Shown: piece by piece, positions 30,068 to 60,373 of the stretch | Layout of the letters: each line of letters opens with the position of its first letter | Position numbering within the stretch: position 1 is the first letter of the stretch | Origin: Selaginella moellendorffii | Taxonomy: Eukaryota; Plantae; Lycopodiophyta | Direction of reading: 5' to 3' | NCBI RefSeq assembly: GCF_000143415.4 | Contig: NW_003314268.1 | Location: 3,604,559-3,668,558 of the forward strand | Length of the DNA stretch: 64,000 nt | Made by a program: the position numbers and the translations under genes | The notes under the pieces: model-generated | What the model was told of the DNA's origin: nothing | Database searches by the model: none | What the model saw: the letters and a program-made list of their open reading frames with translations, nothing else

Positions 30068-32251
30068 TCACAACCTAACAGCCTTAAACATGTTAGACAA
30101 GAGAACATAAGGGGCAGCACTTTTCAGATCTAGATCAAGCCCAGATCTTTGTCTACCTGGGAACAGAGATTTTTCGGGATTTTTACTAAGCTGCCTGTTA
30201 AAGTTAGCAAAAGAGCTAAGTAAGCAGTTCCAATCTCTTGAGTCTGGCAAAAAAGGCATATGCAAGATGAGGTCTTCTGCGTGAACAAGATACCCTCCTC
30301 GTGCAAGTAGATCCACAATGCAACCGTAAAGAACCTTTGACGGATCCATGCTACCGTAATCAACAATAAAAGATCTGAAAAAATTAATACCCACATGAGC
30401 ATCACCCCCGTGGCTGCAAGCAACCAAAACCAAAACAAACGAGCTCTCATCAGGTTTAATTCCTTGAGATATCATCTCCTTGAAAATATCCAGAACAAGT
30501 TGGTAATGTCCACAGTGGGCATACATTGCTAGCATGGTGTTCCAAGTCACTAGATTTCTAATCACCATCCGCTTGAAAACAACACTTGCCGTCTCCAAAT
30601 GACCGTTTTGGGCATATGCAGTTAGCATAGAGTTCCAAGTCACCAGATTTTTATCCGGTATACCATAGAATATGCGCTTCGCATCCTCCAGATACCGGTT
30701 TTGGGAATATGCATCCAGCAGGGAGATGCAAGAGACAAGATTTTGGTCGTGCATGCCATCAAAGAGAATCTTGGCCTCCTCAAGATACCCATTCTGGGCA
30801 TATGCCGCAAGCATGGCATTCCACGTCACAGAATCTCTGCCGGGCATCGTGTCAAATATTTCTTTGGCCTCCTCCACTTGTCCACTTTGTGCATATCCAG
30901 TCAGCATAGTGTTCCACGAGAAAACATCCCACACAGCCATGTTTTGTGACAAAAACCTCTTTGCCCCCGCCAAATCTCCATTTGAGGCATGCGCACTAAG
31001 CATTGCATTACACAAAACCAAATTACACTGTTGTATCCTAGAAAACAGTCGCAAAGATTCATCCAGATTCCCAGCCTGGGCATATGCCGATATTATAGCT
31101 GTCCACGAGAACAAGTCTCTCTCGGCCAAGGCATCGAACATTCTCTTCACCGAGGCCGTGTCACCAATTTGCGCATACGCCGCGAGCATTGCATTGTGTG
31201 CCACAAGATTCCACTCGGGCATCCGATCAAACAGGAGCTTCGATTCCTCAAAGCAATCCCACTGCATGTAAGCCGAGAGCATCGCAGTCCACGAGACAAT
31301 GTTACGCTTTGGCATCTGATCAAAGAGCGCTCTGGCCATCTCCAAATTCCCATTCTGCGCGTAAGCCACAAACACGGTGTTCCACAAAACCACGTCCTTC
31401 TCTCTCTCGTCAACCTTGCGAAACATCCGATTGAGCTGCTCTAGCTCACCGTGCCTGGAATATGCCGCCATTATCGCAGTCCAGGAGATAAGATTCCACT
31501 CCGGGATGCCATTAAACACCTCCTGGGCCCTCTCCAGATGCCCGGCCTGGGCATGCACGGCCAGCAACGTCGTCCACGTCATCAGGTTGACCATGGGCAT
31601 TGATTTGACCACGCGGTCGCACTCCTCCGTACGCTCCACCCTCGCGTACGCCTGCAGCAGCCCGTTCCACGACGCCAGGTCGTTGTACGGCATGGAGTCA
31701 AAAACGTCCCTTGCAGCGTCCACATGCCCGTTCTGGGCATACGTCGCCAGCATGGCATTCCACGTCACAATGTCCCTGTACGGCATCCGGTCAAACATGT
31801 CCTTTGCGCCGTCAATGTGTCCGTTCTGCGCAAATCCAGTCAACATGGCAGTCCACGCGACCAATCCCCTGTCCGGCATCTGGTCAAACAGACTCTTGGC
31901 CTGGGCAACATGCCCGGTCTGGGCATATGCGGTGAGCATGGAAGTCCACGCCACCTGGTCCCGCCACTGCATGGTATTAAAGAGCCGCTCAGCGTCCCTG
32001 ACGTAGCTGTGCCGGGCATAAGCTGTGAGCATGAAGTTCCAGGAGTAGCGATCCTTCTCCTGGATGCCATCGAAGATCTCTTTCGCGTGGTGGATGCTTC
32101 CACACCGGCTGTACATTTGGATGAGGAGATTCGAGAGGTAAGCGGGCAGTGGATCCGAATAGACGAGCCGAGTGGACCGCTCCACATCTCGTGCGTCGGA
32201 CAGTGCGTTGCAGGACTTGATAAGCTCGACGCTCTTGTGGAAGTCACCCAT
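30068..32251 (-). CDS. PLS-class PPR (long 31-aa SS array, E domain, no DYW) - PLS1
   Basis: Repeats of the DLVxWNAMLxAYAQNGH type; ACSHGG...YGCIVDLLARGG...PYVLLSNM. Start placed at MGDFHK by alignment with paralogues. Confidence 0.9.
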   Translation of the reverse strand: MGDFHKSVELIKSCNALSDARDVERSTRLVYSDPLPAYLSNLLIQMYSRCGSIHHAKEIFDGIQEKDRYSWNFMLTAYARHSYVRDAERLFNTMQWRDQVAWTSMLTAYAQTGHVAQAKSLFDQMPDRGLVAWTAMLTGFAQNGHIDGAKDMFDRMPYRDIVTWNAMLATYAQNGHVDAARDVFDSMPYNDLASWNGLLQAYARVERTEECDRVVKSMPMVNLMTWTTLLAVHAQAGHLERAQEVFNGIPEWNLISWTAIMAAYSRHGELEQLNRMFRKVDEREKDVVLWNTVFVAYAQNGNLEMARALFDQMPKRNIVSWTAMLSAYMQWDCFEESKLLFDRMPEWNLVAHNAMLAAYAQIGDTASVKRMFDALAERDLFSWTAIISAYAQAGNLDESLRLFSRIQQCNLVLCNAMLSAHASNGDLAGAKRFLSQNMAVWDVFSWNTMLTGYAQSGQVEEAKEIFDTMPGRDSVTWNAMLAAYAQNGYLEEAKILFDGMHDQNLVSCISLLDAYSQNRYLEDAKRIFYGIPDKNLVTWNSMLTAYAQNGHLETASVVFKRMVIRNLVTWNTMLAMYAHCGHYQLVLDIFKEMISQGIKPDESSFVLVLVACSHGGDAHVGINFFRSFIVDYGSMDPSKVLYGCIVDLLARGGYLVHAEDLILHMPFLPDSRDWNCLLSSFANFNRQLSKNPEKSLFPGRQRSGLDLDLKSAAPYVLLSNMFKAVRL

Positions 32252-32301
32252 GAGACATATCTTCCTTCTAAGTTCTTCCTCGTAGAACTCCTTCGTAGAA
32301 A

Positions 32302-33194
32302 CTAGTTGTCTCGCCAGAAATCGTCGTAGTGCTCGATCAGTGGCACGCCTCTTTTCTTCTGGAGCTTGATGTAGTCCGCGAGATCGTTGGTCACGCGCTG
32401 GGCGAATTCCTCCTGCTCGGCGGCCTGGAGCTTCTTGATGAGGCCCCGGTAGACGAGGTGATGGAGGTGCAAGCCTGGAGTTTTGAGCATCCGGTTGTAG
32501 AACCTCTCCAGGTTTTGGAAGTCGAAGAGATCGAAGCACGCGCTCATCACCGGGACGAACATATGCCGGTTGGGATGCATCTCGTTGGCGTCCATCTCGT
32601 CCATGGTCGTCCACAGCTCGTCAAATCTTCGTAGATTGGTGAGGATGAGGATAAGTTCGCGGTAGAGGTAGCTGTTTGGCTCGTACCACGACTCCTTCTC
32701 GATGATCCGGAAGACCTGGAGACGCAAACCGTGAGGAAGAGCTCCCGGAGGACGAAGTTTTACCTTCAAAGCTATTTCTTCTTCTCGGTGCTTGCGAAGG
32801 ATGGTGAGGACACACAGCATGTCTTTCTTGAGCATCCTCGGCGCGTTTGTTTCTAGATACGAGTCCACCTTGTCTGGATCGTTCTTGCGATGCCTGAGAG
32901 CCGTCACGGTCTGCATTGCTTCTTGGGTGAACTCCCGGAGACGCAGGAACTCCTTGGGGATCTTCTCGGGTCGAAACACCTTCGACTTGGAAGGCCTTGG
33001 ATCTGGAGTGTCGGCCCAAAAGAATCCAACGTTCTTCTCCCTCGATCCTAGGAGAGGAGCTGCCCGGTGGAAAAGACGTATCTTTTGGAGCTGTGCTTCG
33101 AGAGCTCTCCGGGCGAGCGACCCACATCCTGCATTTGGATATCAGCTTTCACTCCAACAAAAAGAGATGAGCACGCACCTCTCCCAGAAATCAT
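32302..33194 (-). CDS. THA8-like small PPR protein B
   Basis: MISGR|GCGSLARR presequence (short intron), EAMQTVTALRH...RMLKKDMLCVL...IALK|VFRIIEKESWYEPN, matching the THA8/THA8L signature. Confidence 0.8.
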
Positions 33195-33204
33195 CTGAAG
33201 AACC

Positions 33205-33998
33205 CTAAACCTTGTGCCTGGCTTCGAGGTCCTTGAGAAGAATCTCGGCTCGCTCGAGCTCCCCGGCGCTGGTGAGCTTGGCGATGAGAAACGCGTAGAA
33301 ATTCGGGCAAACCTTACACCCGATTGCCTTGATCGCCTCGTAGATCTCCATGCACTTGGCAAAGTTCGCCAGGCTTGCAAACTTCCTCACTGGAAAAACG
33401 AGCATCTCCTCCGAAGGCTCGAGCTTCTCGTCGTGTAAGTTCTTGAGCAGCCTCTTCCAGTCTTCGATCCTGTCGTGTTTGATCACGAACTCCATGATCG
33501 ATTGAAAGAGCTGCGCGCTTGGTTTGTACCACATCTCTTCTCGTATGACATCGAATATCTGGAAGAAGAAGGAAGAAAGAGAGCGTCCAGAAGAACTAGA
33601 GAAGAAAGAAAAGATGAGCTCACCTCGAGAACTCTATCGACTTGGTCCTGGTCTTTGAGTGTGAGAAGAACGATCAAGTAATCGTAGCGCATCATTCTGG
33701 CAGAGCGATCCTTGAGCAGCCGCTCCACGTCCTTCTTGCCCCTGGCCGCTCGCTTGATCTCGGTCACCAGCGCCAGAGCTTCCTTGCTGGGAAACATTCT
33801 CTTCCCCTCCGGCCTCCAGTCGATCTCTCTAGCGCTCAGAAGCTCCGACGACACGGCATGGCGACTCTTGACGAAGCTCCTCGTCTGGGCCGCAATCCTC
33901 GAAAATCCCAGCGCGCCTGTGCCACAACATCTAGATCCAATGACATGATCCATGTTCTAGCAGGAAATCTTACGCTTCGCAACGCGTGCTTGCGCCAT
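33205..33998 (-). CDS. THA8-like small PPR protein A
   Basis: MAQARVAK|RALGFSR, SKEALALVTEIKR...RMMRYDYLIVL...VLE|IFDVIREEMWYKPS. Start inferred via a GTAAG...CAG intron; alternative ATG at 33953. Confidence 0.82.
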
Positions 33999-34048
33999 CG
34001 CCTCCAGCTCGATCTCAGTCCCTGCGCGGGTACCCTAGAACAAGAAGG

Positions 34049-36115
34049 ATGAATGTGGCCGAGGTAATCAAATCTTGCCCCAATCTCTCCCAAGCCAAAG
34101 AGATTCACGATTCCATCCCATGCCCACCTTCCATCCCGATCGCCGAGCTCCTCATCCAAATGTATGGCAGGCTTGGCAATGTCGCCATGGCGGCACAGAT
34201 CTTCGATTCCATGCCGTCCAAGACCGTCCTCTCCTGGAACTCCATGATCACGGCCTATTCCCAGAACAACGATATTCGCACCGCGAAGAGATTCTTCGAC
34301 GAAATGCCCGATCGAAGCCTAGTTTCCTGGACCGCAATGCTCAGTGGCTTCCTCGACCATGGCCGGATCACCGACGGCAAAGAGCTATTCGATCGAATGC
34401 CCTGCCGAGACGTATTCACCTGGAATGTCCTCTTAAATTCATATGCCCGGTTAGGGCATCTTGATCTTGCAAAGCATCTTTTTCTTTCAATGCCAGAGAA
34501 AGATGTGATTGCTTGGAACTGTTTGATAGCCCTTTTGGCACGAACACATCGTCTTAAAGAGGCCAGTGAGTTATTCCAAAAGATGCCCCATAGGTCAGCT
34601 CAATCCTGGAATATTCTCCTTGCAGCATATGCCCAGGCAGGGCATATGCTTGAGGCCCGGCATTTGTTTGACGAGATCCCACAAAGGGATCTCATTGCAT
34701 GGACGGCGCTGCTAGCAGCATATTCCCAGAACGGGCATCTTAAAGCGTCAATGGAGATTTTCCACGCGATGCCAATGAGGAATCTCGTGTCCTGGAACGC
34801 CTTTCTCTCGGCTTTCTCACAAGTCGGAGATGTTGAGAGCTCCAAACGAGTGTTCTTTGCAATGCCCGAGTGGAATGTGGTGTCGTGGACGTCGATGTGC
34901 CAGGTTTACATCCACTCGGAGAATCTCGATCGAGCGAGGAAGTTCTTCTTTGAGACGATGCCGGTGAAGAACAGAGTCTCGTGGAACCTGATGCTCACTG
35001 CGTATGCCGAGAGGGCGGATGTCGTCCAAGCGAAGATGGTGTTCGATTCCATGCCAGAGCACGACCTCGTCTCCCTCTCCGCGATGCTGGCTGCTCTGAT
35101 TCAGGCTGGAAACCTGGACCACGCAAAAATATTCTTCAAAACGCTGCCAGCAAGAGGAATCGTCGCGTGCAACTCCATGCTTGCTGCATATATCCAAAGC
35201 GGTCATCTGGAAGAAGCGAAGGAGCTCTTCTTCCGTGGAATGCTCGAGAGGAGCTTGGTTTCCTGGACGACACTTCTCTCCGGCTTTGCAGACAAAGCGA
35301 ATGGAAGTCTTGATCGAGCGAAGGTTTTGTTTGATGAGATGCCCGACCGGGACTTAGTCGCGTTGACTACCATGCTCGCGGCTTACGCATCTCGCAGCCA
35401 CCTTGAAGAAGCCAAATCCATCTTTGATGCTTTGCCAAAGCATGATCTCGTCGCATGGAACGCCATGCTCGCGGCTTACTCCCGAAACGATTGCCTCGAC
35501 GAAGCGGCCAACTTCTTCCATGAAATGCCCGAACGCGATCTTGTCTCTTGGAATTCTATCTTGGAGGCTTACGCGGCGGCTGGTCACGACCGTCTTGCAA
35601 TGAAAACGTTTGAGACAATGCCGGGGAAAGATCTCTTTTCTTGGAGCACCATTCTAGCAATGCACGTCCGGAGCTTGGAACTTGAACTCGTGGCCGAGCT
35701 CTACACTTCCCTGAAGATCGAAGGAATCACTCCGGACGAGATCGCTTTTGTGTGTCTCATCTTTAGTTGCAGCCACGCTGGAGATTTGGACAGAGGTGTG
35801 CACCACTTTAAGTCGATTGCCTTGGATCATGGCGTGGAGCCGAGCAAGCGAGAGTATGGCTGCTTGCTTGATCTTCTTGCCCGAGCTGGGCATTTGCGGG
35901 ATGCTTTCGATCTCGTCGCCAACATGCCGTTTGAGCCGGATGTGGAGGATTGGAAGAGTTTCCTTGCATCTTGCAAGAGTCTCGATGATCTCAAAACAGC
36001 GTCCACTGCATCCAAATCATCGCTGGAGCTGGACTCACGCAGCTCTGTGCCTTATGTGTTGTTGACAAACCTTTGCACTCCAACTTCCGAGCAAAACGTT
36101 GGTTTCAGAATGTAA
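34049..36115 (+). CDS. PLS-class PPR (SS array, E domain, no DYW) - PLS2
   Basis: About 17 31-aa repeats; SCSHAG...YGCLLDLLARAGHL...PYVLLTNL. Confidence 0.92.
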   Translation: MNVAEVIKSCPNLSQAKEIHDSIPCPPSIPIAELLIQMYGRLGNVAMAAQIFDSMPSKTVLSWNSMITAYSQNNDIRTAKRFFDEMPDRSLVSWTAMLSGFLDHGRITDGKELFDRMPCRDVFTWNVLLNSYARLGHLDLAKHLFLSMPEKDVIAWNCLIALLARTHRLKEASELFQKMPHRSAQSWNILLAAYAQAGHMLEARHLFDEIPQRDLIAWTALLAAYSQNGHLKASMEIFHAMPMRNLVSWNAFLSAFSQVGDVESSKRVFFAMPEWNVVSWTSMCQVYIHSENLDRARKFFFETMPVKNRVSWNLMLTAYAERADVVQAKMVFDSMPEHDLVSLSAMLAALIQAGNLDHAKIFFKTLPARGIVACNSMLAAYIQSGHLEEAKELFFRGMLERSLVSWTTLLSGFADKANGSLDRAKVLFDEMPDRDLVALTTMLAAYASRSHLEEAKSIFDALPKHDLVAWNAMLAAYSRNDCLDEAANFFHEMPERDLVSWNSILEAYAAAGHDRLAMKTFETMPGKDLFSWSTILAMHVRSLELELVAELYTSLKIEGITPDEIAFVCLIFSCSHAGDLDRGVHHFKSIALDHGVEPSKREYGCLLDLLARAGHLRDAFDLVANMPFEPDVEDWKSFLASCKSLDDLKTASTASKSSLELDSRSSVPYVLLTNLCTPTSEQNVGFRM

Positions 36116-37250: not shown

Positions 37251-40200
37251 TTAGGGTTCTCTTGTAGATAGGCCGGGATCTGGAGGAACGTCAGGAGGAG
37301 GCATCGGCGGATCTGTAGACGGTATTAACTGCTCCTGATCCCTTTGTATGAAGCGTTTTAACCGCTGCACATGCACAATCTCCGGAGGATCGGTTTGCTG
37401 AACGTCATGCCGAACCTCATAAACTTGCAGTCCAACTTGCCGCAACACTCGATACGGTCCTTTCCACTGCGCAAGGAGCCCCTTAGATAAACCACGTACC
37501 GTAAGATGGGGAAAACGAACTAACACCAAATCATTCACTTTGTACTCCACAGGTGGACGATGATGGGAGTTGTAGCGCCGTTGTTGTCCCACTTGTACGC
37601 GGCCTAAGTGTTCGGCAGACTCTGCTCGGACAAGTGGAAGAATGCTTGTCAAATACTAATCCCATGACCTAGCATCAGGAGCTCGTGGCAATCGCGAAGG
37701 TAAACCCAACTCTGTTGGTAATATTGGATCATGACCATATAGAAGTTTATATGGTGAAGCACCAATAGAACTTTGCACCCCTGTGACATAGGCATATCGA
37801 AGAGACGGCAAATAACCATCCCAATCCGAATGCTGGAAGTTCACATACTTCGAAATCATCCCTTTGAATGTCCGAACGAGCCGTTCCACCAGACCGTCTG
37901 ATTGTGGATGATAAGCACTCGTAAAAGTGTGGCGTATCCCCAACCGAGATGTCAAAACATGAAATACCTCAGCCATAAATGTAGGACCAGTATCCGAAAG
38001 AATCCGCTCTGGACAGGAATGCTGGAACACCACTCGATTGAGGAGGAAGTATCCAACAGCAGTTGCAGAGGCGCTAGCAAGTTCACCAACTTTCACCCAA
38101 CGAGTCAAGTAGTCAGAAGCAATAATAACATACTCATTGCCAGCAGTCGATCGTGGAAAAGGTCCCATAAGATCAAACGCCACAAACTCAAACGGACGGG
38201 AAACTGCAATTGACTCCAACCGTCCTTCCGCAGCACAAGGGGGAGTATTACGAGCTTGGCACCAAACGCAGCTACGCACATACCGGATAATATCACGTTG
38301 CATCTCCGGCCAATAGAAAGACCTGCGCAGCTTCTCGGTGACACGACGGTGTCCCATATGCCCACCTAGAACAGGAGAATCATGGTAGGCATGGAGAAAC
38401 CACGGAATAAACACCGAAGGTACCACCAGTCGTAAATGATCATCAAGATCCGTCCCCACAAAATAAAGAAGGCCATCTTCAAGGCGATATTGAGAATGTA
38501 AATGCCGGAAAAGCAAGTCATCAGCAAGTGATGCAGGATTCTCAAACCCATCTCGAAGCCTTCGAATCCACGGCTCAATCTTTTGAGCCTCGCGAACCTC
38601 CTCAAGAGAAGGCAGATCTTGCTCTGCACCCTGTGGACACTGAACGTCAAGGACAGCAACCGCCGACGGCACAGAATCCTCATCTAGAAAATCCACAGAT
38701 GCTGGAACAACAGGTTCGTCAGAATGATGAGAAGTGAGTGGAGAAGGAAGAGGAGCTCGAGAAAGGGCATCAGCATCAGCCATAGAACTCCCTGGGCGAT
38801 GAACAACATCGAAATCATATATCTGAAGCTTCAAAGCCCATCGAGCCGTACGACCAACCAGGTTCTTCCGCTTCAATAATGAAGTAACAGCAGCATGGTC
38901 ACCTTCAAGTAACGTCCGAGAACCATGTAGATATGCATGAAGTTTCTCAAAACCCCAGACTGCTGCTAAACACTCCTTCTCCGTCGTGGAGTAGTTCATC
39001 TCCGCTGGTTGTAATGTACGGCTTATGTATGCAATGGGATGGCGCTGACCAGGCACACTCGAGCTCTCTTGCATCAACACACCTCCAAGACCAATGTCAG
39101 AAGCATCCACGCACAAAATAAAAGGTCGAGTGTAGTCAGGATATGCCAAAACCGGAGGAGTCGTCAATAGCTCCTTGAGATCCACGAACGCCCGCTCACA
39201 ATCCGGAGACCAGATGAAAGATGACGTTGATGACTTCAGCAACGTTCGCAATGGTGTAGTGCGATCGGAAAGATGATCCACAAAACGACCAAAATACTAC
39301 ACCTTACCCAAAAAGCGCTGCACATCATTCACACACTTCGGAGTAGGGAACTTTAGAACAGCCACAAGTTTGTCAGGATCAACTTGCAAACCCTCACAAG
39401 AAATACGGTACCCAAGATAAGTTGTGTCCTTGGACCCAAACACGCACTTCGACCGCTTCAGCTTTAAACCAACGTCGCGTAGCCGATCCAACACTTTACA
39501 AACATCACGAACGTGCTCCTCCCACGTCCCCTCCGAGTGGATCAAAACATCATCAATGAGGTCAGCAATCACCTCCAGCATATCGCAAAGAACCTCGTCC
39601 ATCATCCGCTGGAAAGTTGCTGGAGCATTGTTCAAACCAAACGGCATCACCAAGAAGTCGTACAAACCAAATGGTGTACGAAAAGCAGTCTTAGGAATAT
39701 CTTCTTCGGCCATCGGTACTTGCCAATACCAAGAAGCAAGATCTAGCTTGGTGAACCAACGACTCCGTCCCAGACGATCCAAGAGATCAGCAGTGTGAGG
39801 AAGAGGATACATATCTGGGATCGTCACTTCATTTAACGGACGATAGTCGATGCAGAAACGAATACTCCCATCAAGCTTCGTCACAAGATGAGGTTCACAT
39901 GCCCAAGGACTCCGTGACTTCCGAATAACACCCTTTTCCAGCATTTCCTTGACGTTTGCTCGTAAAATTTTGATCTCCTTAGGTGACCGACGACGAACAG
40001 GAACCTTGATTGGACGAGCATCCCCGGTTGGAATTGGATGACGTGTGGCAATCTTGGCCCCAGACGATAGGTCAAATTCAAAGAGATCAGAATACTCCTT
40101 CATGAGCCGGTCAACTGCTACAACACAAAGATCGTCGTAGGGATCGGAAAAGGGAAAAACAGAACAAGATGAAAACACAGAAGGAAAGAGTGGGGAAACA

Positions 40201-40739
40201 AAAGTAATGGAAGCAGAGGTAGAAGTAGAGGGACGAAGAGGTATGGAAGTGAGAGGAATGGATGAAACATAAGGAAGTATGAGACAAGGGGGAGAAGCCT
40301 CAAAGTCACACTTGGCATGATTGCGCTGTAACCAATCCATACCAAGAATGAGGTCAAAAGCTTGACTCGGCACCACCCGCAACGACTGCAACTCAAGTTC
40401 GAGATCGCCCACACGCACAACCAGGTCCACCTCATCCCGTGCACATGCATGTGTACGGCCGTTGCCATAAAGAATGAAAACTGGTTCTGCCGCACGACGC
40501 AAGTGTAGACGACAACGTGTGGCAACAGGTCGAGCAATAGAAGATAAACTCGAACCTGTATCAACCAACACGGAGAGAATAATAGGAGACTTCTTGTTAT
40601 AAAAACGAGCTTGGAAAGTAAACACTGGATGAACTAGTGCCGAGTGAACCCCTTGATGATACTCCCAAAAGAAAGATGGAGGGGTCACTGATTTATTTGC
40701 GCAAGGTCCCTCCGTTACTCGCGCGACTCCTCGTTTCCC
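37251..40739 (-). pseudogene. Gypsy pol (PR-RT-RNaseH-INT) with two in-frame TAG stops
   Basis: ORFs 39297..40850, 37656..39281 and 37251..37652 are in one frame; KTAFRT, MPFGL, DASD, HHCC, YHPQSDG, GPY. Confidence 0.92.
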
Positions 40740-41648
40740 AGATGCATCTCGGTGTCCAGACCTTCCACTGCAGCAACACCTAGGGGACGTTGCTGATGCC
40801 AAGGTCTCCACCCAGGAAATGGAGGTCGCCAATCCAGAAAACAACAGCAACGCCGATAAGTATGACCAACTTCATCACACGCCCAGCAGCGAACATCACG
40901 GCCACGACCACGTCCTCGCGCTTGTCCTTGGACTCGAGCAGCAGCAGCATCAACCTCCATTGGAACAGGACCATCACCCATAGGAAGTGGAGCGGAAGGA
41001 CGTGCAGCGAGAAGTGGAAGAGGCGACGTCTCATAACGTTGTGCCAAGCGAAGAGCATCGTCAAGGGTGGCAGGAGCAAGTGCATGCACAAGTCCGACAA
41101 GATCTTGACGAAGTGCTGGCCACAACATTCCTAGCTTGATCCGCTCCGACATATTTGGCTCCGCACGAAACAAAAGACTTCGGAAACGAACGCCAAATTG
41201 CATCACCGACTCCGATGGCCCTTGGCGAAGACGATGCAATTGTTGGAAAGCATCATCACAATCATCGGCATGTCCGAAGGCGCGTTTGAAGACGTCCGGG
41301 AGAACACTCCAATCCCCACGAGTAGCTGCGCTTAAACCATTGTACCACTGCAACGCCATCCCTTGGAGACACGTGGGAAACTCACGCAATCGTCGAGCAT
41401 CATCCCAAGAATGATATGTGGCAATCACCGTAAAGTGATCGAACCAATGGTACACATCATCCCCAGGATTCCCGCGAAAGAACTTTGGTCGAACGTGAGG
41501 ATTGGCACCAAGAGCAGGAGGAGTTGTACCACGTGCCGTGAACGCCGCCATCAACTGAGTTTGGTTGTTCAATTGCAAGCGCATAGCATCAAGCAATTGA
41601 ACCAACTACTGCTCTAGAGTCAAAGGAGGAGATTGCGGATCGGCCATG
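40715..41648 (-). pseudogene. Gypsy gag with one early TAG
   Basis: Retrotransposon-gag-like sequence, PVPMEVD and CWACDEVGHTYRRC knuckle. Confidence 0.88.
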
Positions 41649-51802: not shown

Positions 51803-53622
51803 GCCTTAGATAGTCATGGGCACCAATTTTTTCTCATCTCACGATTTTTTTGCTCACAAGGATCGTAATGTGATAAGCATGTATGGATACATACGAAATT
51901 TGCTCCCTTGACCGACTGTGTGCTGCCTAGAAGGTCGTAAAAGCTTGACAATCAGACTATGTGCTGCCTAGAAGGTCGTAAAAGATTAACAATCCGACTG
52001 TTTGCTGCCTAGAAGGTCATAAAGTTTAACAATCTGGGAAGGAATAAGAGAAATTTTCGTTAACAGGTGTCTTATTATATAAATAGTTTATAGCTGAATT
52101 TTTGTAACGTGGTTCTAAGCGCCATATGACTGATGTTTTATGGATTGCAAGTACTATCCAAACACACATAAAGCAGCGCTTTTCCATCAGGTGTCCACTC
52201 TTTTTATTTTCATTTGCTTTAGATTTTTAGCTGTGTCACGTCCAGTGAAAACCACACCGACAATCAACTTGAACTTCGATCGAAAATTAAGAAAATTTTC
52301 CCTGTAGTTTTCAGCAAGAGCGTGGCGGGACAGGGACCTCAGAGTGGCATGGGGAGATGGAGAAACGTGAGCGTGGGAATGGACGGAGAGAGAAGACTTC
52401 CACAACAAACTTGCAAACTTGTTTGCACAGTCTCTCATGCTTTTTGTTGGGCACTGCCAGACTGCCAAAACAGAATATAAAATAGAATAGACTATCAAAA
52501 GGAAACTTGAAATATACCACGAACCCAGTACATACAAGAGGTAAGGTGTGAGTATGTAGCTGGGAGCACTATGTGCTTAATGCCCTCCCTGCAAGCAAAT
52601 GAAACAACGCCCCTGTAATAGCAAAAGCACAATGTATCAAGTTTGTTACACACTTTGGCATACCTGTAACTTTATCAATGAGGACAAATAAAATTTATAA
52701 TATTAGAAAATGTTATTCTGATTAATCTATGTTGTGTCAATGATATCTAAGTTATGACTTCACCTAGTTATTGCAATATTTCCTAATGGTTTTTAATATT
52801 TTTGAAAGATTTAATTATGTATAGAAATTGTTGTAAGGGTTAATTGTTATATTATACCTTTATACCAGTTAAGATTTGATTCATTCTAAATTTGATCAAA
52901 ATGCATATAAGAAAAAGAGAATTCCACCAATCTATTGCAGAAACAAGCCACATATATAATTTAATGTTGTTAACTAAAGTTTGTAATATTTTACTCATAT
53001 TGTGATAATAATAATTAAAAATTATTTGCTACAAGAACTTGTTTTAAATTTCATCACGTAACTTTTTGGTTTGCTTAAGTATGGGGAGTAAGATGGTAGT
53101 TAGAACATGTTTGGATATTCTGGGATATTCTACAATCTAATGGTTATTATTCATTTAGATTAATCTTTTTTTTCTAATTTATAAACATGCTTATAATTTA
53201 TAAACTTTCCTAAACACTTGTTAATATATTCTAGTTTATTCTTACACAATAAGATTATCCTTATATTTATAAATTATAAATTTCCATTTGATCAATTGGA
53301 TTAATAAATAGGTGTAACGCATTGCCACGTGGAAGGCACAGCAAATTATTTACATTGTATGAATTTTATTGTTGTCAATGTTTTAACTGTCGTATTTTTA
53401 CTGATGAACACTCCCTTTAAATTGAATGTATAACTCATCTTCAAAAACAGATTAAAAGAGAAAGAAAACTTGCAATTGCACGGCAACACAAATTTATGCA
53501 TATACTTCACATCTAGACATGAGCATTTTGACCCTAAATAATTACACATTAAATGTAAATGTAGAAAGACTGGGAGAATCCAATCTGGGGTTGTCTTGGA
53601 CTCAGGGATATCACCGCCCAAA

Positions 53623-53822
53623 GTTGAAGATCAAAGGAATCACTCCGGACTTGGACAGAGGTGTGAGGCACTTGAAGTCGATCGTCTTGGATCACGGCCT
53701 GGAGTCAGGCAAGCAAAAGTATGGCCGCTTGCTTGATCTTCATGCTCAGAGGCTAGGCATTTGCAGCATCGTCTCTTGGAACGAGGCGAACGTCTTGTAA
53801 GGAAAACGTTTGCAACAATGCT
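53623..53822 (+). pseudogene. Scrambled fragment of a PLS2-like PPR C-terminus
   Basis: LKIKGITPD-LDRGVRHLKSIVLDHGLESGKQKYGRLLDL matches about 35711-35897. Confidence 0.75.
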
Positions 53823-54491: not shown

Positions 54492-56273
54492 TCAAGCACG
54501 GACGAAGCTCGTCAAAAATCCACTCTCTGGAACGAATGGCATGCTTGCAATGAGGTCCCGAGCATCTCTTAAATGCCCAGCTCGACTGAGAAGATCAACC
54601 AAGCAACCGTATTGTTCTTTCGTAGCCACCAAGCAATGGTCGCGCAGCATCGAAGCGAAGTAAAGCTTGGCGACTTTAAGATCGCCACAGTGGCTGCAGG
54701 CAAGAAGTATTCCAGAGAAGGAAACCTCGTCAGGGCGAGAACCATCCATCGCCATCTCGTTGTAAATCTCGAAAGTTTGCTCAAAGTTCCCGGCTTGGGC
54801 ATTCAGTGTAAGCATTGCATTCCACGCAGTAGAGTCTTTCTTCTCCGGCATCTGCTGGAACAGTACTAGAGAACTTGCGAGGCATCCCTTCTGTCCATAC
54901 GCCACCACCATTTGCGTCCAGGAAACCATGTCTTTCTCTGGCATAGCCACGAACAAGGCAGTGAGTTCCAGCAGATTTCTCCTCTCTTGGCCCTGGTTAT
55001 ACGCAGCAAGCATGGCATTCCACGAAACAGCATCGTGGTATGGCATGCCATGATCGAACAGGCACTTGGCTTGCTCGAGTTTCCTGTGCTGGACGAAGCC
55101 CACCAGCATTGTCGTACACGAGATCAAGCTCCTGCACGGCATTGCTCGGAAGAGAATGGTGGCGTTTTCCAAGTTCCCGCTATCGCCTTCTTGGGAGAAT
55201 GCCATGAGCATTGCATTCCAGGCCACGAGGTTCCACTCGGGCATGGAATCAAAGACGCAATTGGCTTCGTGGAGCTTTCTCTTCTGAGCAAGATCGACGA
55301 GCACCAAGTTCCACGACACAATGTTCTTCACCGGCATTCGCGAGAAGAAGTTATCCTTCAAGGTGGAATCCTCTCCCTGGTGCTGAAGGTACAAGCCCAG
55401 CATGACAGTCCAGGCGACCACTCCTCTCTCCGGGAGCATCTCCTCAAACATGATCTCCGCTTTGGTGATCTCTCCAGCTTGAACATACACCGAAAGCATC
55501 GCGTTCCACGAGACCAAGTTCCGAAATGGCATCCCCTTGAAGCACTCCTCGGCAGATTTAACGTCTCCAACGCGGGAGAAACCGCAAAGTAGTGTGGTCC
55601 ATGAAACCATATCGCGATCCGGCATCGCATCAAAGAACTGCTTTGCACTTTCAATATGCCTTGTTTGGGCAAATGCTGCAAGAACTGCATTCCACGACAG
55701 TGTGTTTCTTTCGGGCATTGCGTGAAAAGCTTCCAGGACATGATTTATAAGACTTGCGCTTTCAAACGCTGACAATAGTGTGTTCCAGGTGACAATGTTA
55801 CGTTCTGGAAATGATCGGAAGAGCTCCAAAGCTCCTACCAAATGCCCAGACTTGGCAAATGCGGAAAGCATCGCGTTCCACGAAACTAGATCCCGTTGTG
55901 GCATCGCATGGAAGAGCTTGGTGGCGCGATCGAGATCGCCGCTTCGCGAGAATCCAGTGAGCAGGCAAGTCCATGAGATCTCATTTCTATCGGGCATGTC
56001 GTCGAAGAGAAGTGTGGCGCTGTGGAGATCTCCGGCGTGGACGTAGACACCCAGCATCGTGTTCCAGGCGCCAATGTCTTTGACAGCCATCGAATCGAAA
56101 ACGCTCCTCGCGGACTCCACGCTGCTGCAATTCGCAAACATCTGGACGAGGAGATTCGAGATGGAGTAGTGGGCAGATCCATCGCTGCTGGCGCGCGCCT
56201 GCGCGTAGATCTCCCGCGCCTCGGCGAAGCTCCGGCACGATCTGATGCGCCGCGCGAGGCCCTGGAGATCCAT
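54492..56273 (-). CDS. PLS-class PPR - PLS3; E domain frameshifted
   Basis: SS array, ACSHCG...YGCLVDLLSRAGHL. The tail LSDVEAG...DAPYVLKASIF continues in another frame to about 54382. Confidence 0.88.
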   Translation of the reverse strand: MDLQGLARRIRSCRSFAEAREIYAQARASSDGSAHYSISNLLVQMFANCSSVESARSVFDSMAVKDIGAWNTMLGVYVHAGDLHSATLLFDDMPDRNEISWTCLLTGFSRSGDLDRATKLFHAMPQRDLVSWNAMLSAFAKSGHLVGALELFRSFPERNIVTWNTLLSAFESASLINHVLEAFHAMPERNTLSWNAVLAAFAQTRHIESAKQFFDAMPDRDMVSWTTLLCGFSRVGDVKSAEECFKGMPFRNLVSWNAMLSVYVQAGEITKAEIMFEEMLPERGVVAWTVMLGLYLQHQGEDSTLKDNFFSRMPVKNIVSWNLVLVDLAQKRKLHEANCVFDSMPEWNLVAWNAMLMAFSQEGDSGNLENATILFRAMPCRSLISCTTMLVGFVQHRKLEQAKCLFDHGMPYHDAVSWNAMLAAYNQGQERRNLLELTALFVAMPEKDMVSWTQMVVAYGQKGCLASSLVLFQQMPEKKDSTAWNAMLTLNAQAGNFEQTFEIYNEMAMDGSRPDEVSFSGILLACSHCGDLKVAKLYFASMLRDHCLVATKEQYGCLVDLLSRAGHLRDARDLIASMPFVPESGFLTSFVRA

Positions 56274-56336
56274 CTCCTGTGTAGCGCATTTTCTTTCACG
56301 CGGGAATTTAGGGTTCTTCCATTCGCTAGTGAGGGA

Positions 56337-57772
56337 ATGCTACTAGGCATAGCGCTCGCCAAGAGTAAGATCAAGCTCTTGGATCGCGCTGCTCTTGCTG
56401 CCTCCTCGATCAGGCGATTCGGCGCCAATCGCTGGGACAGGGAAGGGGATTACGAGTGCGACGATGTCGACATTGGCAGATTTGTGGAGCTCTTCCCGAG
56501 CAAGAAGATCAGGGACGCGGCGCCGCCCAAGACACTGCGGGCCAGCCGCGAATCCGCCACGGTCATCCAGCTGCTGAGGAGCGCCAAGAAATCCCCGGCC
56601 AAGCTCGATGCGTACCTGGGCAGCCACGCTTCGCGGCTCCTTTGCAAGGATCTCCAGTACGTCTTGAATGTGTTCCTCAAGAACCAGGAGAACGACATAG
56701 ACCTGGCTTTCAAGGTACGTGGTAGCATTCTCGTCCTCGTTTGTTCGTTCTACGCTCGTGTTCGTGGAGATCCATGCTTTCTACGCGTAAGCTTTGCTTT
56801 GTCGTCGGTTTCTCTCCATGCTGTCCGCGATTTTTTGCGGAGTTTCCTTGTCTCGTTGTTTGTTCTTCCTAGTGTTGTTGGAAGATCTATCACGTTTAGA
56901 TCCACTTGTCTGTTTGGAAGTCTGGCGATTGGAAGTTTCATGGATCTTAAGGTTGTATTTTCTCTCCATGCTGCCTTGCGTCTTTGTGCGTGTTCTTGAA
57001 CTTGCCAAGGTTTTGTTATCTCGTCCCGAGTATGGTTTGTTCTTTCTAGGTTTGAAGATCCATGATTTCTATGATTGGAATGTCCATCTTCTTGTTCTCG
57101 CGAGTTCTGGTTCTTGCCTTCGTTTACTCGTGGTTTTCTCTCCATTGCATGTTCTTGATCTTGCCAGGGTTTTGTTATCTCGTCCCCAATGTTGTTTGTT
57201 CTTTCTACGTTTGTGTTGTTGTTATCTATCATGTTTTCTTACGTGTGTGTTTGGAAATCACGTCTCCTCCTTGTCTCCTCGCAAGGTTTCGTCTCCTGGA
57301 AGTCCATCTGCTTGTTCTCGCGAACGGCATTTCATGTCCTTGGATCTAAGTATCTGTTTTGCAGATTTTCGAGCTGATTCGAAAGGAGAGCTGGTACAAG
57401 CCGAGCGAATCAACCTACATGCGGCTTGTCAGCTTCTACTGCCGCGCCGACGAGAGGAAGAAACCAATGAGACCAATCCTGGAGCTTCTCAACACGGCGC
57501 AGGGCGAGGGCGTCGCCCTGTCGGAGGCCATGCTCACGGAGCCCATGCGCTGCTGCATCCTCCAGGCAGACTTCGATACGTGCCTCCAGTTTTACAGGCT
57601 CATGCGCTCGTCGGGGTGCCAAGTTCATCGCGGCCTCTACACCTACCTGGCCAAGAGCTTTAGCAGGGCCGGGCTCAAGGAGAAGTCCTTCCAGATCTTT
57701 GCGGATGCTCCGGCGGAACAAGCTCCCTCCAGATTGGAGAAGAGGGAGAGAGTCTTTTTTGTCGAAGATTAG
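56337..57772 (+). CDS. THA8-like small PPR protein C; exons 56337-56714 and 57365-57772
   Basis: SRESATVIQLLRSAK...SRLLCKDLQYVL...LAFK|IFELIRKESWYKPS; GT-AG intron of 650 bp. Confidence 0.85.
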
Positions 57773-57866: not shown

Positions 57867-59438
57867 ATGAAGTTAGCTGAGTCGATAAAATCATGCAAAG
57901 ACTCCAACCAAGCCAGGCAAATCCACAAGCTTGTGGAGGAGCATAGAGAGCACATATCTCAGGACACTTCCCTCTACTTGAGCAAGCTTCTCATACGAAT
58001 GTACGTGCGCTGCTCCTGCACAGCTCCTGCCAAGAACATCTTCGACCTCATGGAGCACAGAGACGTTTTCTGCTGGAATCTGATGCTCACAGCATTTGCC
58101 CAGGATGGCTGCCTCTGCGAGGCGCAGAAACTGTTTGATGCCATGGGGTTCAGGACCACCGTTTCATGGACAATCATGCTGGCGGCTTATTCACAGCAGG
58201 GAAAAATAGCTCAGGCCGAGATCTTATTTTCCTCTATGCCCGAAAGAGATGATGTTGCGTGGAATGCGATGTTGGCGGCATATACCATTCACGGGCATGT
58301 TGTTGCCGCAGCTCGATGCTTCGAATCAAACCCAAGACCGAACTTAACATCGTGGAACTGCATGCTGGATGGGTTTTCGCGTGCTGGCAAGCTGAAAAAT
58401 CTAGTGGAGACTTTCAAGAAGATGCCACTGTGGGATATGATCTCATGGAACACTCTGCTATCTGCATATGCCCAGTTAGGGTATATGGAAAAACTAAACA
58501 ATGTCTTCCGTGCAATGCCTTGGCACAACCTTGTCTCGCTCACTTCCATGCTAACTGCGTACTCAAACCACACTTGCTACTTCGGAAGAGCTCGGATATT
58601 GTATAGATCGCTGCCTGCGTACACTCTGGTGACTTTCACAGCCATGATAACAGCATACACACAAAATCAAAGTATCAGCGAAGCGAAGCTCTTGTTTGAC
58701 GACATGCCGGAATGGGATCTTGTCTCCTGGAACTCCATGCTCGCGGCCTATGCCCGGAACGGACATATCGAGCAAGCCATTTGCTTCTTTGAAAGCATGC
58801 CTGTGGTGGACATCTTCTCCTGGAACTCCATTCTCTGGGCCTACTCAGTTGGAGGCCATGTCGACCAGGTGGAGATTTTGTCACAGGCGATGCCGGAGAT
58901 GGACCTTGTGTCGCTAAACTCAGTCCTGTCCGTCAATGGAAGCTTGGGCGAGATCGAGGCGTTCTTCTCTTGTATGCCGTCTCGTGACTTGGTGTCGTGG
59001 AATTCCATGCTCGCTGCATACGCACAGAACGGACGCGTCCGGCAAGCTCAGGAGTTGTTTCAAGCCATGCCTGATCGTGATCTCACTTCCTGGAGGACAG
59101 CCTTGTCCAACCACGCCCGCAACGTCGATGGCTTCCAGAAAGAAGTGTTTGGAGACCTGAATGTCCAAGGTGAGAATCCGGACGAGATGTGCTTTACGAG
59201 CTTACTGTTTGGATGCAGCCACAGGGGTGATGCTACCCAAGCGTGTAAGCTGTTCGCTTCCATGCTGGTCGATTATGGGCTGGAGCCAACCAAGTTGCAA
59301 TTTAGCTGCATCATCGACCTTCTAGCTCGTGCGGGCCACCTGAGAGATGCCAATGATCTCGTCGTCAACATGCCTTTCATGCCTATTGCTGAAGACGTAC
59401 AGAGCTTGCTGGCGTTCTGCTTTCCAAAGCCAGCGTAA
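57867..59438 (+). CDS. PLS-class PPR - PLS4; truncated E domain
   Basis: SS array, GCSHRG...FSCIIDLLARAGHL...MPFMP. Confidence 0.88.
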   Translation: MKLAESIKSCKDSNQARQIHKLVEEHREHISQDTSLYLSKLLIRMYVRCSCTAPAKNIFDLMEHRDVFCWNLMLTAFAQDGCLCEAQKLFDAMGFRTTVSWTIMLAAYSQQGKIAQAEILFSSMPERDDVAWNAMLAAYTIHGHVVAAARCFESNPRPNLTSWNCMLDGFSRAGKLKNLVETFKKMPLWDMISWNTLLSAYAQLGYMEKLNNVFRAMPWHNLVSLTSMLTAYSNHTCYFGRARILYRSLPAYTLVTFTAMITAYTQNQSISEAKLLFDDMPEWDLVSWNSMLAAYARNGHIEQAICFFESMPVVDIFSWNSILWAYSVGGHVDQVEILSQAMPEMDLVSLNSVLSVNGSLGEIEAFFSCMPSRDLVSWNSMLAAYAQNGRVRQAQELFQAMPDRDLTSWRTALSNHARNVDGFQKEVFGDLNVQGENPDEMCFTSLLFGCSHRGDATQACKLFASMLVDYGLEPTKLQFSCIIDLLARAGHLRDANDLVVNMPFMPIAEDVQSLLAFCFPKPA

Positions 59439-59611
59439 GCAAAGCCTGTAAGGTTTGTGTGTTGATAAACAAAGTTGTTTCTAAGTGGAAGTCCATCCTG
59501 GAAGAGCTTGCTGAACAGGAAAACAAAGGAAAAGAATGAGAAAAGTTTGAATCAACACAGTTAGCGTACCGCGTGAGAGAGAAGCGCTTGGCCAACCTCG
59601 ATGGATTTTCC

Positions 59612-60373
59612 TCACTCTTCTTCCAGCAAAGTCCGCAATCCCTGTGTGTTTCGTAGCTCCAGATAGTGCTCGTAAACCTTCTGCGCCTCGTCTAGCAGCC
59701 CAGCCTCCTCGAACTTCCTGGTGAGGTACATGTAGAAGCGGACGTCCTTCCGGCACGTCGAGGCATGCATCCGGTTGTAGAGCCTCATGCACGCATCGAA
59801 GTCGTTGCTGCTCACGCACGCTTGGATGGGAGTCTGGAACGAGAAAACATTTGGAATGAGCCCCTCCTCCTCCGATTCATCCAGCAGCTGGAAAATCCTC
59901 TCCATCGCCTTGGAATCCAATCTCTCGCTGTAGGCAGTGATGAGATGCAAGTAGAGCGATGCCTGTGGCTTGTACCAGCTTTCCTTCCGGACCAAGCCAA
60001 AAATCTGCCAAGTTCCAATGGACAAACACGACATTTTGATAAGGAATCCCAGCTCTCTTACCAATTCCGCAAGATCCATCTCCTTGGCCCTGACGAAGAC
60101 CCAGAAGAGCGACATGAGCTCCTTCGTCAGCAGCCTAGAAACGGAGGTCCGCAGCACGGATTTGAGCCGGTCAGGATCGCCTTTGGCCTTCTTCATCATG
60201 GTCGCCACACTGACCGTCTCCAAGCTCATGGACGGGATCCGGCGCGTCTCCACCTCCTGCGGCATCAGCAGCCTGCGCTTGATGGAATCGAAAGACCGCT
60301 CCAGCTGCGGCAGATCGTGAAGCGCAGCCCTAGCGCCGCTGCTTAGCGCCCGCGCTTGCCAGAGAATGCGCAT
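59612..60373 (-). CDS. THA8-like small PPR protein D (57-bp in-frame intron at about 60005-60061)
   Basis: SLETVSVATMMKKAK...SRLLTKELMSL...LAEL|IFGLVRKESWYKPQ. Confidence 0.85.
   Translation of the reverse strand: MRILWQARALSSGARAALHDLPQLERSFDSIKRRLLMPQEVETRRIPSMSLETVSVATMMKKAKGDPDRLKSVLRTSVSRLLTKELMSLFWVFVRAKEMDLAELVRELGFLIKMSCLSIGTWQIFGLVRKESWYKPQASLYLHLITAYSERLDSKAMERIFQLLDESEEEGLIPNVFSFQTPIQACVSSNDFDACMRLYNRMHASTCRKDVRFYMYLTRKFEEAGLLDEAQKVYEHYLELRNTQGLRTLLEEE

Follow-up and report, generated by a model that had tools for sequence, protein, structure and literature searches.

Two kinds of PPR gene alternate at one locus of the lycophyte Selaginella moellendorffii, and we asked whether this order reflects a partnership between the encoded proteins or the way in which the locus itself has grown. 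The window that we analyzed is a 64-kb (64,000-nt) stretch of scaffold GL377572.1, for which GL377601.1 is the allelic haplotype scaffold. Within it, four intact S/SS-array PLS-class PPR genes each adjoin one of four THA8-like (THA8L) genes, A to D, which comprise 223–264 codons in two to four exons, and the gaps between neighbors measure 10–173 nt. In cluster 1, THA8L-A (33998..33205, minus strand, 223 aa) and PLS2 (34049..36115, plus strand, an intronless ORF of 688 aa) lie head-to-head with their start codons 50 nt apart. A gap of 10 nt separates the end of A from the start of THA8L-B (33194..32302, minus strand, 264 aa), and B leads head-to-tail, across a gap of 50 nt, into PLS1 (32251..30068, minus strand, an intronless ORF of 727 aa). 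In cluster 2, PLS3 (56273..54492, minus strand, an intronless ORF of 593 aa) and THA8L-C (56337..57772, plus strand, 261 aa) are again head-to-head, with start codons 63 nt apart, and PLS4 (57867..59438, plus strand, an intronless ORF of 523 aa) starts 94 nt past the stop codon of C in head-to-tail orientation. THA8L-D (60373..59612, minus strand, 234 aa) is convergent with PLS4, from which 173 nt separate it, and on its other side 92 nt lie between the D start codon and the stop codon of an upstream BFA1-like gene. On rechecking of the coordinates, the genes proved to have the order, strands and spacings that an earlier note had given for positions 30068–60373, and each PLS gene does, as stated there, abut a THA8L gene (4/4). 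Four abutting pairs exceed the expectation from random placement; they are not independent events, because all of them sit in one amplified locus.

The small genes, which had been called THA8-like from their sequence, do belong to the THA8-like (At3g46870) short-PPR family. A profile of the four A–D first exons matched only PDB entry 4leu among 177,635 PDB sequences (E 5.4e-7), THA8 not being matched in that search; the match stops exactly at the exon boundary and is collinear with that of the exon-2 profile, which matches THA8 at E 3e-7. An exhaustive HMMER search with the N-terminal region and the WYKP motif returned 141 hits from 1.8 billion sequences, nearly all of them single-stretch proteins of 200–300 aa or shorter fragments. 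The fold test was run on the AF2 model of D (pLDDT 86, ten helices), A, B and C being placed by sequence only, and Foldseek ranked 4leu first (E 1e-8, TMt 0.82, rmsd 2.9 Å) and THA8 at ranks 2–4 (TMt 0.62–0.64). Exon 2 of D also matches Pfam PPR_2 above its cut-off. Like Arabidopsis THA8L (At3g46870, PDB 4leu) and its land-plant orthologues of 220–270 aa, A–D have an N-terminal family-specific helix region (chain residues 73–128) followed by about four PPR-like hairpins, and the D model has the same fold. Their N-termini are R/S/A-rich and predicted to be disordered, with D residues 1–24 at pLDDT <50 in the AF2 model.

The four copies are as strongly diverged, with all frames open, as the earlier note had held. 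Pairwise identity is 18–35% among A–D and 20–32% between them and any other family member, and their branches measure 1–2 versus a median of 0.42 substitutions per site, that is, they evolve 2–5 times faster than other members. The conserved Selaginella copy E (LOC9656559, "THYLAKOID ASSEMBLY 8-like, chloroplastic"), an orthologue of Arabidopsis THA8L, is 45% identical to that of Ginkgo. A–D thus differ from At3g46870 orthologues in their divergence, with branches 2–5 times longer, and in standing as four copies at one locus. To our knowledge, Arabidopsis THA8L has no established function. THA8 itself (maize and Arabidopsis At3g27750; PDB 4me2, 4n2q), which is likewise a short PPR protein and falls in the same broad subfamily, acts in the chloroplast as a splicing factor for the group II introns ycf3-2 and trnA. 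Unlike it, A–D lie on the THA8L branch, as indicated by the N-terminal exon profile that misses THA8, and the splicing role of THA8 is therefore not transferable to them.

All four THA8L genes carry a phase-0 intron immediately before the motif (I/V)FxxIxxExWY(K/E)P, of 65 nt in A, 48 nt in B, 650 nt in C and 57 nt in D, confirmed by RNA contigs for A and B and by GenBank models P0004 and P0002 for C and D, respectively. The shared intron claimed in the earlier note is therefore present in 4/4 genes, but it is no special tie, since a phase-0 intron before (I/V)F..W(Y/F).P also occurs in F, G and H, paralogues at other places in the genome; its position marks the THA8L family, not a particular bond among A–D. 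THA8L-A (exons 33998..33973, 33915..33624 and 33558..33205) has an additional intron of 57 nt, its two RNA joints being 33915>33973 and 33558>33624, and its TAG stop at 33207–33205 is retained in RNA. The frame of THA8L-B (exons 33194..33179, 33128..32764 and 32715..32302) is open from the ATG at 33194 and includes an extra 16-nt first exon that is visible in RNA together with its 50-nt intron (33178..33129); this intron and the second, 48-nt intron (32763..32716) are joints in all four RNA runs. GenBank model P0003, a fusion of A and B, is unsupported among the RNA joints listed, and the contigs retain the A stop codon. THA8L-C (exons 56337..56714 and 57365..57772) has a span identical to that of SELMODRAFT_407939 (P0004), and its long intron holds degenerate repeats of ~160 nt each. 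THA8L-D (exons 60373..60062 and 60004..59612) corresponds to SELMODRAFT_407940 (P0002), and its intron is in-frame.

Turning to the larger genes, PLS1–4 match Pfam PPR profiles at E 1e-62 to 1e-125 (PLS1, 1e-125), show a repeat period of 31 aa with canonical 5/last code pairs (TD/ND/NN/TN) in most repeats, and are ~40% identical to one another. PLS1 consists of an S/SS array of 31-aa repeats followed by P2-L2-S2 and an E1-like remnant, and PLS2 of an S/SS array with an E1-like end, the remnant reading "...PYVLL(S/T)N" in these two; PLS3 and PLS4 terminate inside S2. A conserved C-terminal block, ...CSHxGD...DLLxRxG...MPFxP, is found in the PLS genes. Pfam gave no match to PF20431 (E motif), though homologues have it, nor to PF14432 (DYW) in any of the four PLS proteins, and neither HSE(K/R)LA nor CxxCH nor a PG-box occurs in the six frames of the window. 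The earlier designation as DYW-less PLS-PPR genes accordingly holds, but none of the four is a full PLS-E protein, as all lack E2 and PLS3 and PLS4 end in S2. Across seed plants, the closest named homologues of PLS1–4 are At4g02750, and the long 31-aa S-type arrays ending in P2-L2-S2 are common to both; At4g02750-like proteins belong to the editing-factor class. E1-E2-DYW (PF20431, PF14432) is present in the seed-plant homologues but neither in PLS1–4 nor in most related Selaginella proteins, PF14432 being absent from most Selaginella members of the PLS1–4 subgroup. PLS1–4 further differ from At4g02750-like proteins in having no evident presequence: their ORFs begin 5–10 residues ahead of the first conserved motif (M..L...IKSC...), and the RNA contigs of cluster 1 contain no upstream coding exon for the PLS genes. 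Beside cluster 2, tblastn located the relic of a PLS-gene C-terminus (53621..53749, plus strand), 51% identical to PLS2 residues 554–612 and with a deletion, a mark of birth and death among the genes at this site.

Both haplotypes keep all eight reading frames open, and the PLS3 and PLS4 alleles are intact on GL377601.1. Allelic pN/pS was ~0.36 for PLS3, ~0.07 for C, ~0.36 for PLS4 and ~0.53 for D, and moderately low (0.36–0.6) for PLS2–PLS4. Among the RNA-run variants listed, 14 synonymous versus 5 non-synonymous changes fall in PLS1 and 7 versus 1 in B, with synonymous changes also in the N-terminal extension of B. All eight genes are under purifying selection, and the claim that the THA8L genes are still open proved correct and holds for the PLS genes as well, with no breaks in either haplotype and pN/pS of 0.07–0.53.

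RNA contigs, spliced and drawn from runs of four studies, cover cluster 1 (PLS1, B, A and PLS2). Individual contigs span PLS1 and B (X1, X7), B and A (X6), or PLS1, B, A and PLS2 together (X5); in X1 record 4 and X5 record 6, spliced A exons are joined to the first 0.5–1.5 kb of PLS2. These four genes have shared or overlapping transcripts, and neighbors are probably co-expressed because their RNAs overlap or are read through. As to the co-regulation proposed in the earlier note, co-expression is physically plausible in cluster 1, from which the contig data come and where contigs run through A, B and PLS1 and bridge into PLS2.

The genes surrounding the family elsewhere told a different story from the locus itself. 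In a comparison that took in the loci of F, G, H, P0256 and P0286, the THA8L-family genes F (L003), G (L006) and H (L005) had unrelated neighbors and no adjacent PLS gene, and the nearest PLS relatives, P0256 (L004) and P0286 (L007), had no THA8L gene within 10 kb. The THA8L–PLS adjacency thus did not recur at these loci, and an older, conserved adjacency may exist at the locus of E (LOC9656559) or in Diphasiastrum. Unrelated genes in this genome are as a rule just as tightly spaced (~90 nt), in line with the earlier caution about other genes in the window: D and the BFA1-like gene, and the BFA1-like gene and L36e, are each 92 nt apart, the PLS gene at L007 starts 100 nt after Psb28, and one PLS gene shares 4 nt with a convergent gene. 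In the THA8L tree, C and D are sisters (98). The likelihood improved over that of the free tree when A–D were joined in one clade (AU p 0.77), and a single clade of PLS1–4 was not rejected (p 0.54). Resolution is poor in both trees, the long A and B branches may attract artificially, and no congruence between the two gene trees is demonstrable. The proposed co-duplication is best understood as local amplification of physically linked genes, not as the origin of a dedicated functional module.

The contigs lend themselves to a stronger reading, which we hold as a tentative possibility, that A, B and PLS1, and perhaps C with PLS4, form one capped, spliced, polyadenylated nuclear mRNA yielding two or three proteins by termination-reinitiation or leaky scanning. 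Single contigs in the runs of four studies have the A and B introns removed and continue through PLS1, ending 20–284 nt past its stop codon, with no ends between genes. The 10 nt between the A stop and the B ATG are lost as a gap in the X5/X6 allele, where, as read from the indel table, an 8-nt deletion shifts the A stop to a TGA overlapping the B ATG (ATGA), and the 50-nt intron right behind that ATG lies in RNA continuous with the last exon of A. Green algae are an established case of polycistronic mRNAs from the nucleus (PMC7896298, PMC11892635), and the algal loci share with A-B-PLS1 very short inter-ORF distances and RNA continuous over several ORFs. The algal evidence includes single molecules and the translation of both ORFs, whereas A-B-PLS1 is known from assembled contigs. 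Such contigs fuse transcripts that overlap by 31 nt, and separate overlapping mRNAs would look alike; they also bridge the divergent genes A and PLS2, which is impossible as one mRNA, so that merging does occur here. Moreover, as a third cistron ~1.6 kb from the cap with many AUGs ahead, PLS1 would be hard to reach by scanning. At the other extreme, the PLS genes could be decaying, formerly PPR-DYW editing factors, C-terminally truncated, devoid of a targeting peptide and transcribed as passengers. The absence of E2 and DYW, the ends of PLS3 and PLS4 inside S2, the lack of an evident presequence, the degraded PLS fragment nearby and pN/pS values of PLS2–PLS4 that are only moderately low all fit this idea, but the ORFs of 523–727 codons are interrupted neither in the two haplotypes nor in the RNA-run alleles, despite ~60% divergence between copies. 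Together with the excess of synonymous variants in PLS1, the code pairs kept in most repeats and the lack of DYW in most subgroup relatives in Selaginella as well, which indicates that truncated proteins are an established type rather than freshly damaged ones, this makes decay very improbable.

The earlier note had inferred a module, possibly of a specificity factor plus partner. In this reading the DYW-less PLS protein would be the specificity factor and the adjoining THA8L its dedicated, co-evolving partner, the two genes being kept adjacent and co-expressed so that cognates are made together. Consistent with this, 4/4 PLS genes adjoin a THA8L gene, all eight genes are intact and constrained, neighbors share RNA or bidirectional promoter space, A–D evolve at the elevated rate that co-evolving partners might show, and the PLS proteins, having no deaminase, would need a factor in trans if they edit. 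However, the pairing is not seen again at F, G and H or beside P0256 and P0286, tree congruence is not demonstrable, and close packing is general in this genome, which together leave the module reading weak. The expression units are not one-to-one either, A and B going with PLS1, C with PLS4, and D standing alone and convergent. We know of no deaminase and no PLS-binding function in THA8L proteins. They would therefore not supply the missing deaminase activity, as judged from what is known of the family and from a review (PMC13041630). We therefore consider such a partnership unlikely.

Instead, we favor, at a probability of roughly 0.6, the reading that two PPR gene kinds were amplified together in place at one locus and then rapidly diverged, with no protein partnership being selected. 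The kinds amplified would be a short THA8-like (At3g46870-type) PPR gene and an intronless S/SS-array At4g02750-like PLS gene without E2/DYW. Because Selaginella packs genes 10–100 nt apart, copies would come to share bidirectional promoter space (A/PLS2, PLS3/C) and to continue into their neighbors (A into B and on into PLS1, C into PLS4). The alternation would then represent duplicated linked neighbors, such as a PLS<->THA8L->PLS block of which an inverted copy was made, plus extra THA8L copies. Every protein would be an organellar RNA-binding factor working on its own, the THA8L copies presumably as small chaperone- or splicing-type PPRs and the PLS copies as sequence-specific binders that would require a deaminase in trans if they take part in editing at all.

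This locus resembles the tandem, fast-evolving Rf-like PPR clusters of flowering plants in its local amplification, rapid divergence, relics and clustering. Rf-like clusters consist of one gene type (P-class), whereas two structurally unrelated PPR types alternate here and share transcripts. Two observations sit less easily with amplification in place. Strict alternation has been kept despite deep divergence (18–35% identity among A–D, ~40% among PLS1–4), with all eight genes constrained; this orderliness exceeds what simple birth and death predicts and could reflect selection for linkage. In addition, the PLS proteins start at the first PPR-like motif and have no evident presequence that would take them into organelles.

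Taken together, the locus looks like a locus-specific, co-expressed mixed PPR cluster and not a genome-wide partnership. It is distinctly unlikely, in our estimate, that the THA8L paralogues are dedicated helpers of the adjoining deaminase-less SS-type PLS proteins, produced from shared operon-like (polycistronic or bidirectional) nuclear units. Were this nevertheless true, Selaginella would possess a lycophyte-specific two-component RNA-recognition system that evolved under extreme organellar editing, and the system would include a nuclear mRNA for more than one protein, rare in land plants, with stop/start coupling of A and B.

The two clusters of PPR genes were delineated by ORF listing and sequence reading, which returned the order and orientation described in the earlier note. 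In cluster 1, the large PLS-class gene PLS1 (32251..30068, minus strand) is followed by the small THA8-like (THA8L) genes B (33194..32302, minus) and A (33998..33205, minus) and by a second large gene, PLS2 (34049..36115, plus). Cluster 2 consists of PLS3 (56273..54492, minus), the small gene C (56337..57772, plus), PLS4 (57867..59438, plus) and the small gene D (60373..59612, minus). The spacings reported for the head-to-head and head-to-tail pairs were also reproduced: the divergent start codons lie 50 nt (A/PLS2) and 63 nt (PLS3/C) apart, and the head-to-tail junctions measure 50 nt (B to PLS1) and 94 nt (C to PLS4). Only 10 nt separate the stop of A from the start of B, and 173 nt lie between the convergent PLS4 and D. 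On concatenated exon coordinates, all eight gene models were in correct phase with open frames. The window is nuclear DNA from scaffold GL377572.1, at about 3.60–3.67 Mb; NCBI names its encoded proteins as Selaginella proteins, and a genomic locus reached via the GenBank protein SELMODRAFT_407939 (L001) is identical to the window from 46337 onward. An intronless P-class PPR ORF of 1063 aa with at least 14 PPR_2 stretches (25309-28497, minus) lies 1.5 kb from PLS1, bringing the region to nine PPR genes within 35 kb. Mobile elements were also observed: a Ty3-type LTR retrotransposon with gag, protease, RT, RNase H and integrase in three ORFs between the clusters (37656-41605, minus), and a copia-type polyprotein ORF (1423 aa, apparently intact) at the start of the window (151-4419, plus).

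Some purifying selection acts on each of the eight genes. A second haplotype (GL377601.1) carries cluster 2 in the same order with every gene intact, and allelic pN/pS was 0.36 for PLS3, 0.07 for C, 0.36 for PLS4 and 0.53 for D. For cluster 1, the variants listed from the RNA runs were classified on concatenated exon coordinates; among these, synonymous and non-synonymous changes numbered 14 and 5 in PLS1, 7 and 1 in B, 1 and 1 in A, and 3 and 6 in PLS2, with two of the synonymous changes in B falling in its N-terminal extension.

We then consider the identity of the small genes. Each of A–D carries a phase-0 intron immediately before the motif (I/V)FxxIxxExWY(K/E)P, and, as the earlier note had stated, the four are strongly diverged (18–35% pairwise identity) yet all intact in frame. 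Pfam matches were weak, with only exon 2 of D passing the PPR cut-off. A profile of the second exons matched PPR structures generally, including At3g46870 (THA8L, 4leu) and THA8 (4me2), and scored designer PPRs at 230 bits versus 48 for THA8L. The first-exon profile had a single match in the whole PDB, 4leu residues 73-128 (E 5e-7), which stops at the exon end, where the exon-2 match starts. Because a full-length profile would be swamped by long PPR proteins, the N-terminal region with the WYKP motif was used as the query in an exhaustive HMMER search, which recovered 141 proteins with E below 0.001, nearly all of them land-plant single-stretch proteins of 200–300 aa or shorter fragments. Word-indexed protein searches with D and with the family alignment matched only the window's own proteins, the other paralogues being too diverged for such searches to see. 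The structure that AlphaFold predicts for D (pLDDT 86) had 4leu as its top fold match (TMt 0.82), followed by THA8. The exon-profile, HMMER and fold matches thus assign A–D, on sequence and for D also on a fold model, to the THA8-like branch and not to THA8 itself, so that the proposed THA8-like assignment holds. The experimentally known splicing function is that of THA8, not of THA8L. The intron of C (56715-57364) is 650 nt long versus 48–65 nt in its paralogues and contains degenerate direct repeats, three to four in number and each about 160 nt long, the best pair agreeing at 88% over 68 nt; they were seen by a separate repeat search, Tandem Repeats Finder having reported nothing in this intron. 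At3g46870 itself is placed in the THA8-like family by a review (PMC13041630) and likewise by a moss overview (PMC9459714).

S. moellendorffii has at least eight THA8L-family members, four of them at the A–D locus. The others are E (LOC9656559, 'THA8-like, chloroplastic'), the conserved orthologue judging by its 45% identity to the Ginkgo protein, together with F (SELMODRAFT_416782), G (P0022, named 'At1g62350-like') and H (P0067). The intron shared by A–D is indeed present in all four, but F, G and H have it at the same position, making it a family marker rather than the sign of a special tie. In the THA8L tree, C and D were sisters (98), and the end branches of A–D measured 1–2 substitutions per site versus a median of 0.42. 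When A–D were held to one clade, the likelihood improved on that of the free search (AU p 0.77).

The large genes gave very strong PPR matches in Pfam, and none of PLS1–4 matched E_motif or DYW_deaminase. A hidden downstream DYW exon was rejected, as the DYW signature is absent from every frame of the 64-kb window. The arrays consist mostly of 31-residue S/SS-type repeats, with a self-identity maximum at offset 31 and the canonical fifth/last residue pairs TD, ND, NN and TN. They close with a P2-L2-S2 block, inside the S2 of which PLS3 and PLS4 terminate; PLS1 and PLS2 retain an E1-like remnant. The description of these genes as DYW-less PLS genes is therefore upheld, while their PLS-E status is not, given the lack of an E_motif match and the restriction of the remnant to two genes. 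Their named relatives are At4g02750-like; seed-plant members of this group have E and DYW domains, whereas most of the Selaginella relatives listed lack them, indicating that the deaminase-less form, as read from protein sequences, is a stable Selaginella type. Sequence reading revealed no evident N-terminal presequence or organelle-targeting extension in any of the four proteins, and the first conserved motif (M..L...IKSC..) begins within 5–10 residues of the start in each. Mutual identity among PLS1–4 is 38–42%. Downstream of PLS3, in low-GC DNA, a degraded PLS C-terminus fragment (53621-53749, plus) is 51% identical to PLS2 residues 554–612 and has an internal deletion; the annotated GenBank PLS3 model (703 aa) runs on into this low-GC stretch, in which nothing but a PLS fragment is present.

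RNA evidence was confined to the 6 kb of cluster 1 and came as assembled contigs from four runs (X1, X5, X6 and X7). These contigs are spliced and hence derive from RNA: four of four minus-strand introns appeared as contig joints with GT..AG ends (32716-32763, 33129-33178, 33559-33623 and 33916-33972). In all four runs, B has a 16-nt first exon followed by the spliced 50-nt intron 33129-33178. The GenBank model SELMODRAFT_407937 (468 aa; 32302-33998, minus) fuses A and B through a predicted intron that removes the stop of A; the required junction is absent among the joints listed and the stop is kept, and the model looks wrong. Reading the indels against the sequence, X5 and X6 share an 8-nt deletion (1 + 7 nt, 33214-33224) just before the stop of A, which shifts the frame and changes the last residues of A, so that A ends instead at a TGA overlapping the ATG of B (ATGA); the A/B junction differs here by allele or strain. 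In X7, an insertion of 32 letters stands at 34028/34029, within the 50 nt that separate the starts of the divergent A and PLS2, an indel polymorphism of their common upstream region.

Single contigs joined PLS1 with spliced B (X1 and X7), B with A (X6), and PLS1, B, A and the first 1.5 kb of PLS2 (X5), and contigs ended 20–284 nt past the PLS1 stop. Such continuity over gene junctions points to shared or overlapping transcripts, and the cluster 1 neighbours are likely co-expressed through them. To this extent the suggested co-regulation is made probable, although contigs cannot show single molecules. A true multi-protein mRNA at cluster 1 is a possibility, but the divergent A and PLS2, which cannot share one mRNA, were also bridged, demonstrating that overlapping transcripts do get merged in these contigs. 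Our literature search found no paper on nuclear polycistrons in Selaginella.

Next, we asked whether THA8L–PLS adjacency is a rule by inspecting 20 kb around each of F, G and H. F adjoins a peptidase M48 gene and has no PPR gene within 10 kb. H lies between Arf GTPase and MDHAR genes, with a PPR-DYW gene two genes off. G is flanked by an aldolase gene on one side and, on the other, by a decayed partial copy of itself and then a Dit1/PvcA-type isocyanide synthase gene (locus L006 on GL377602.1, locus positions 10001-15615, with the decayed copy at 12438-12762). Within the window, too, a Dit1/PvcA relic with a 2OG-dioxygenase lies between the clusters (48.7–51.8 kb), and the two Dit1/PvcA regions may be old paralogous segments. 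Conversely, the closest PLS genes to PLS1–4 elsewhere, P0256 and P0286, have no THA8L within 10 kb. P0256 shares its last 4 nt with an unrelated convergent gene, whose 224-aa product matched no Pfam family and did not resemble THA8L (locus L004 on GL377579.1, locus positions 10001-13202); P0286, a close relative of PLS1, starts 100 nt past the Psb28 stop on the same strand (locus L007 on GL377601.1, locus positions 8961-12129). Within the window, gaps of 92 nt separate D from a BFA1-like gene and the latter from the gene for ribosomal protein L36e, in line with the caveat, raised at the outset, that other genes here are also tightly spaced. Tight abutment of PPR genes with any neighbour is thus ordinary in this genome. 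The adjacency was confined to the A–D locus, one of four independent loci inspected, and does not hold as a general rule. With PPR genes presumably numbering about 800 in S. moellendorffii, PLS genes would make up a few percent of all genes, and one adjacency in four loci is unremarkable. The literature search turned up no paper that connects THA8L with PLS genes.

The likeliest origin of the alternation is that linked neighbours were co-amplified locally, in a genome that is very compact. The layouts PLS2<->A->B->PLS1 and PLS3<->C->PLS4<-D suggest an inverted duplication of a PLS<->THA8L->PLS block to which further THA8L copies were added, though the sequences are too diverged for proof. Amplification in place fits the PLS2-like relic, the C/D and A–D groupings above and the PLS tree tests: in the tree of the C-terminal 210 aa of PLS proteins, which was itself unresolved, monophyly of PLS1–4 (p 0.54) and a PLS3+PLS4 clade (p 0.50) were both acceptable. 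The co-duplicating module thus survives in its duplication part, while a dedicated THA8L–PLS protein partnership lacks support. That all eight genes have been kept in order through deep divergence leaves some room for such a partnership; against it, the adjacency did not recur at the other loci inspected, known THA8L biochemistry lends it nothing, and neither does congruence of the THA8L and PLS trees. Pairwise identities carried no pairing signal among PLS1–4, nor among A–D beyond C/D. Were the pairing functional, it would point to a new kind of accessory factor for the PLS class of PPR proteins, in a lineage whose organellar editing sites run to thousands and which is not known to have MORF proteins, and the enigmatic THA8L family would gain a role.

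As matters stand, the locus documents a lineage-specific, fast-diverging THA8L expansion and exposes what looks like a wrong GenBank fusion of two genes. It is also a well-resolved case of Selaginella neighbours 10–100 nt apart, two THA8L genes and then a PLS gene, whose RNAs run together, and such loci allow the question of polycistronic nuclear mRNA in land plants to be tested directly.
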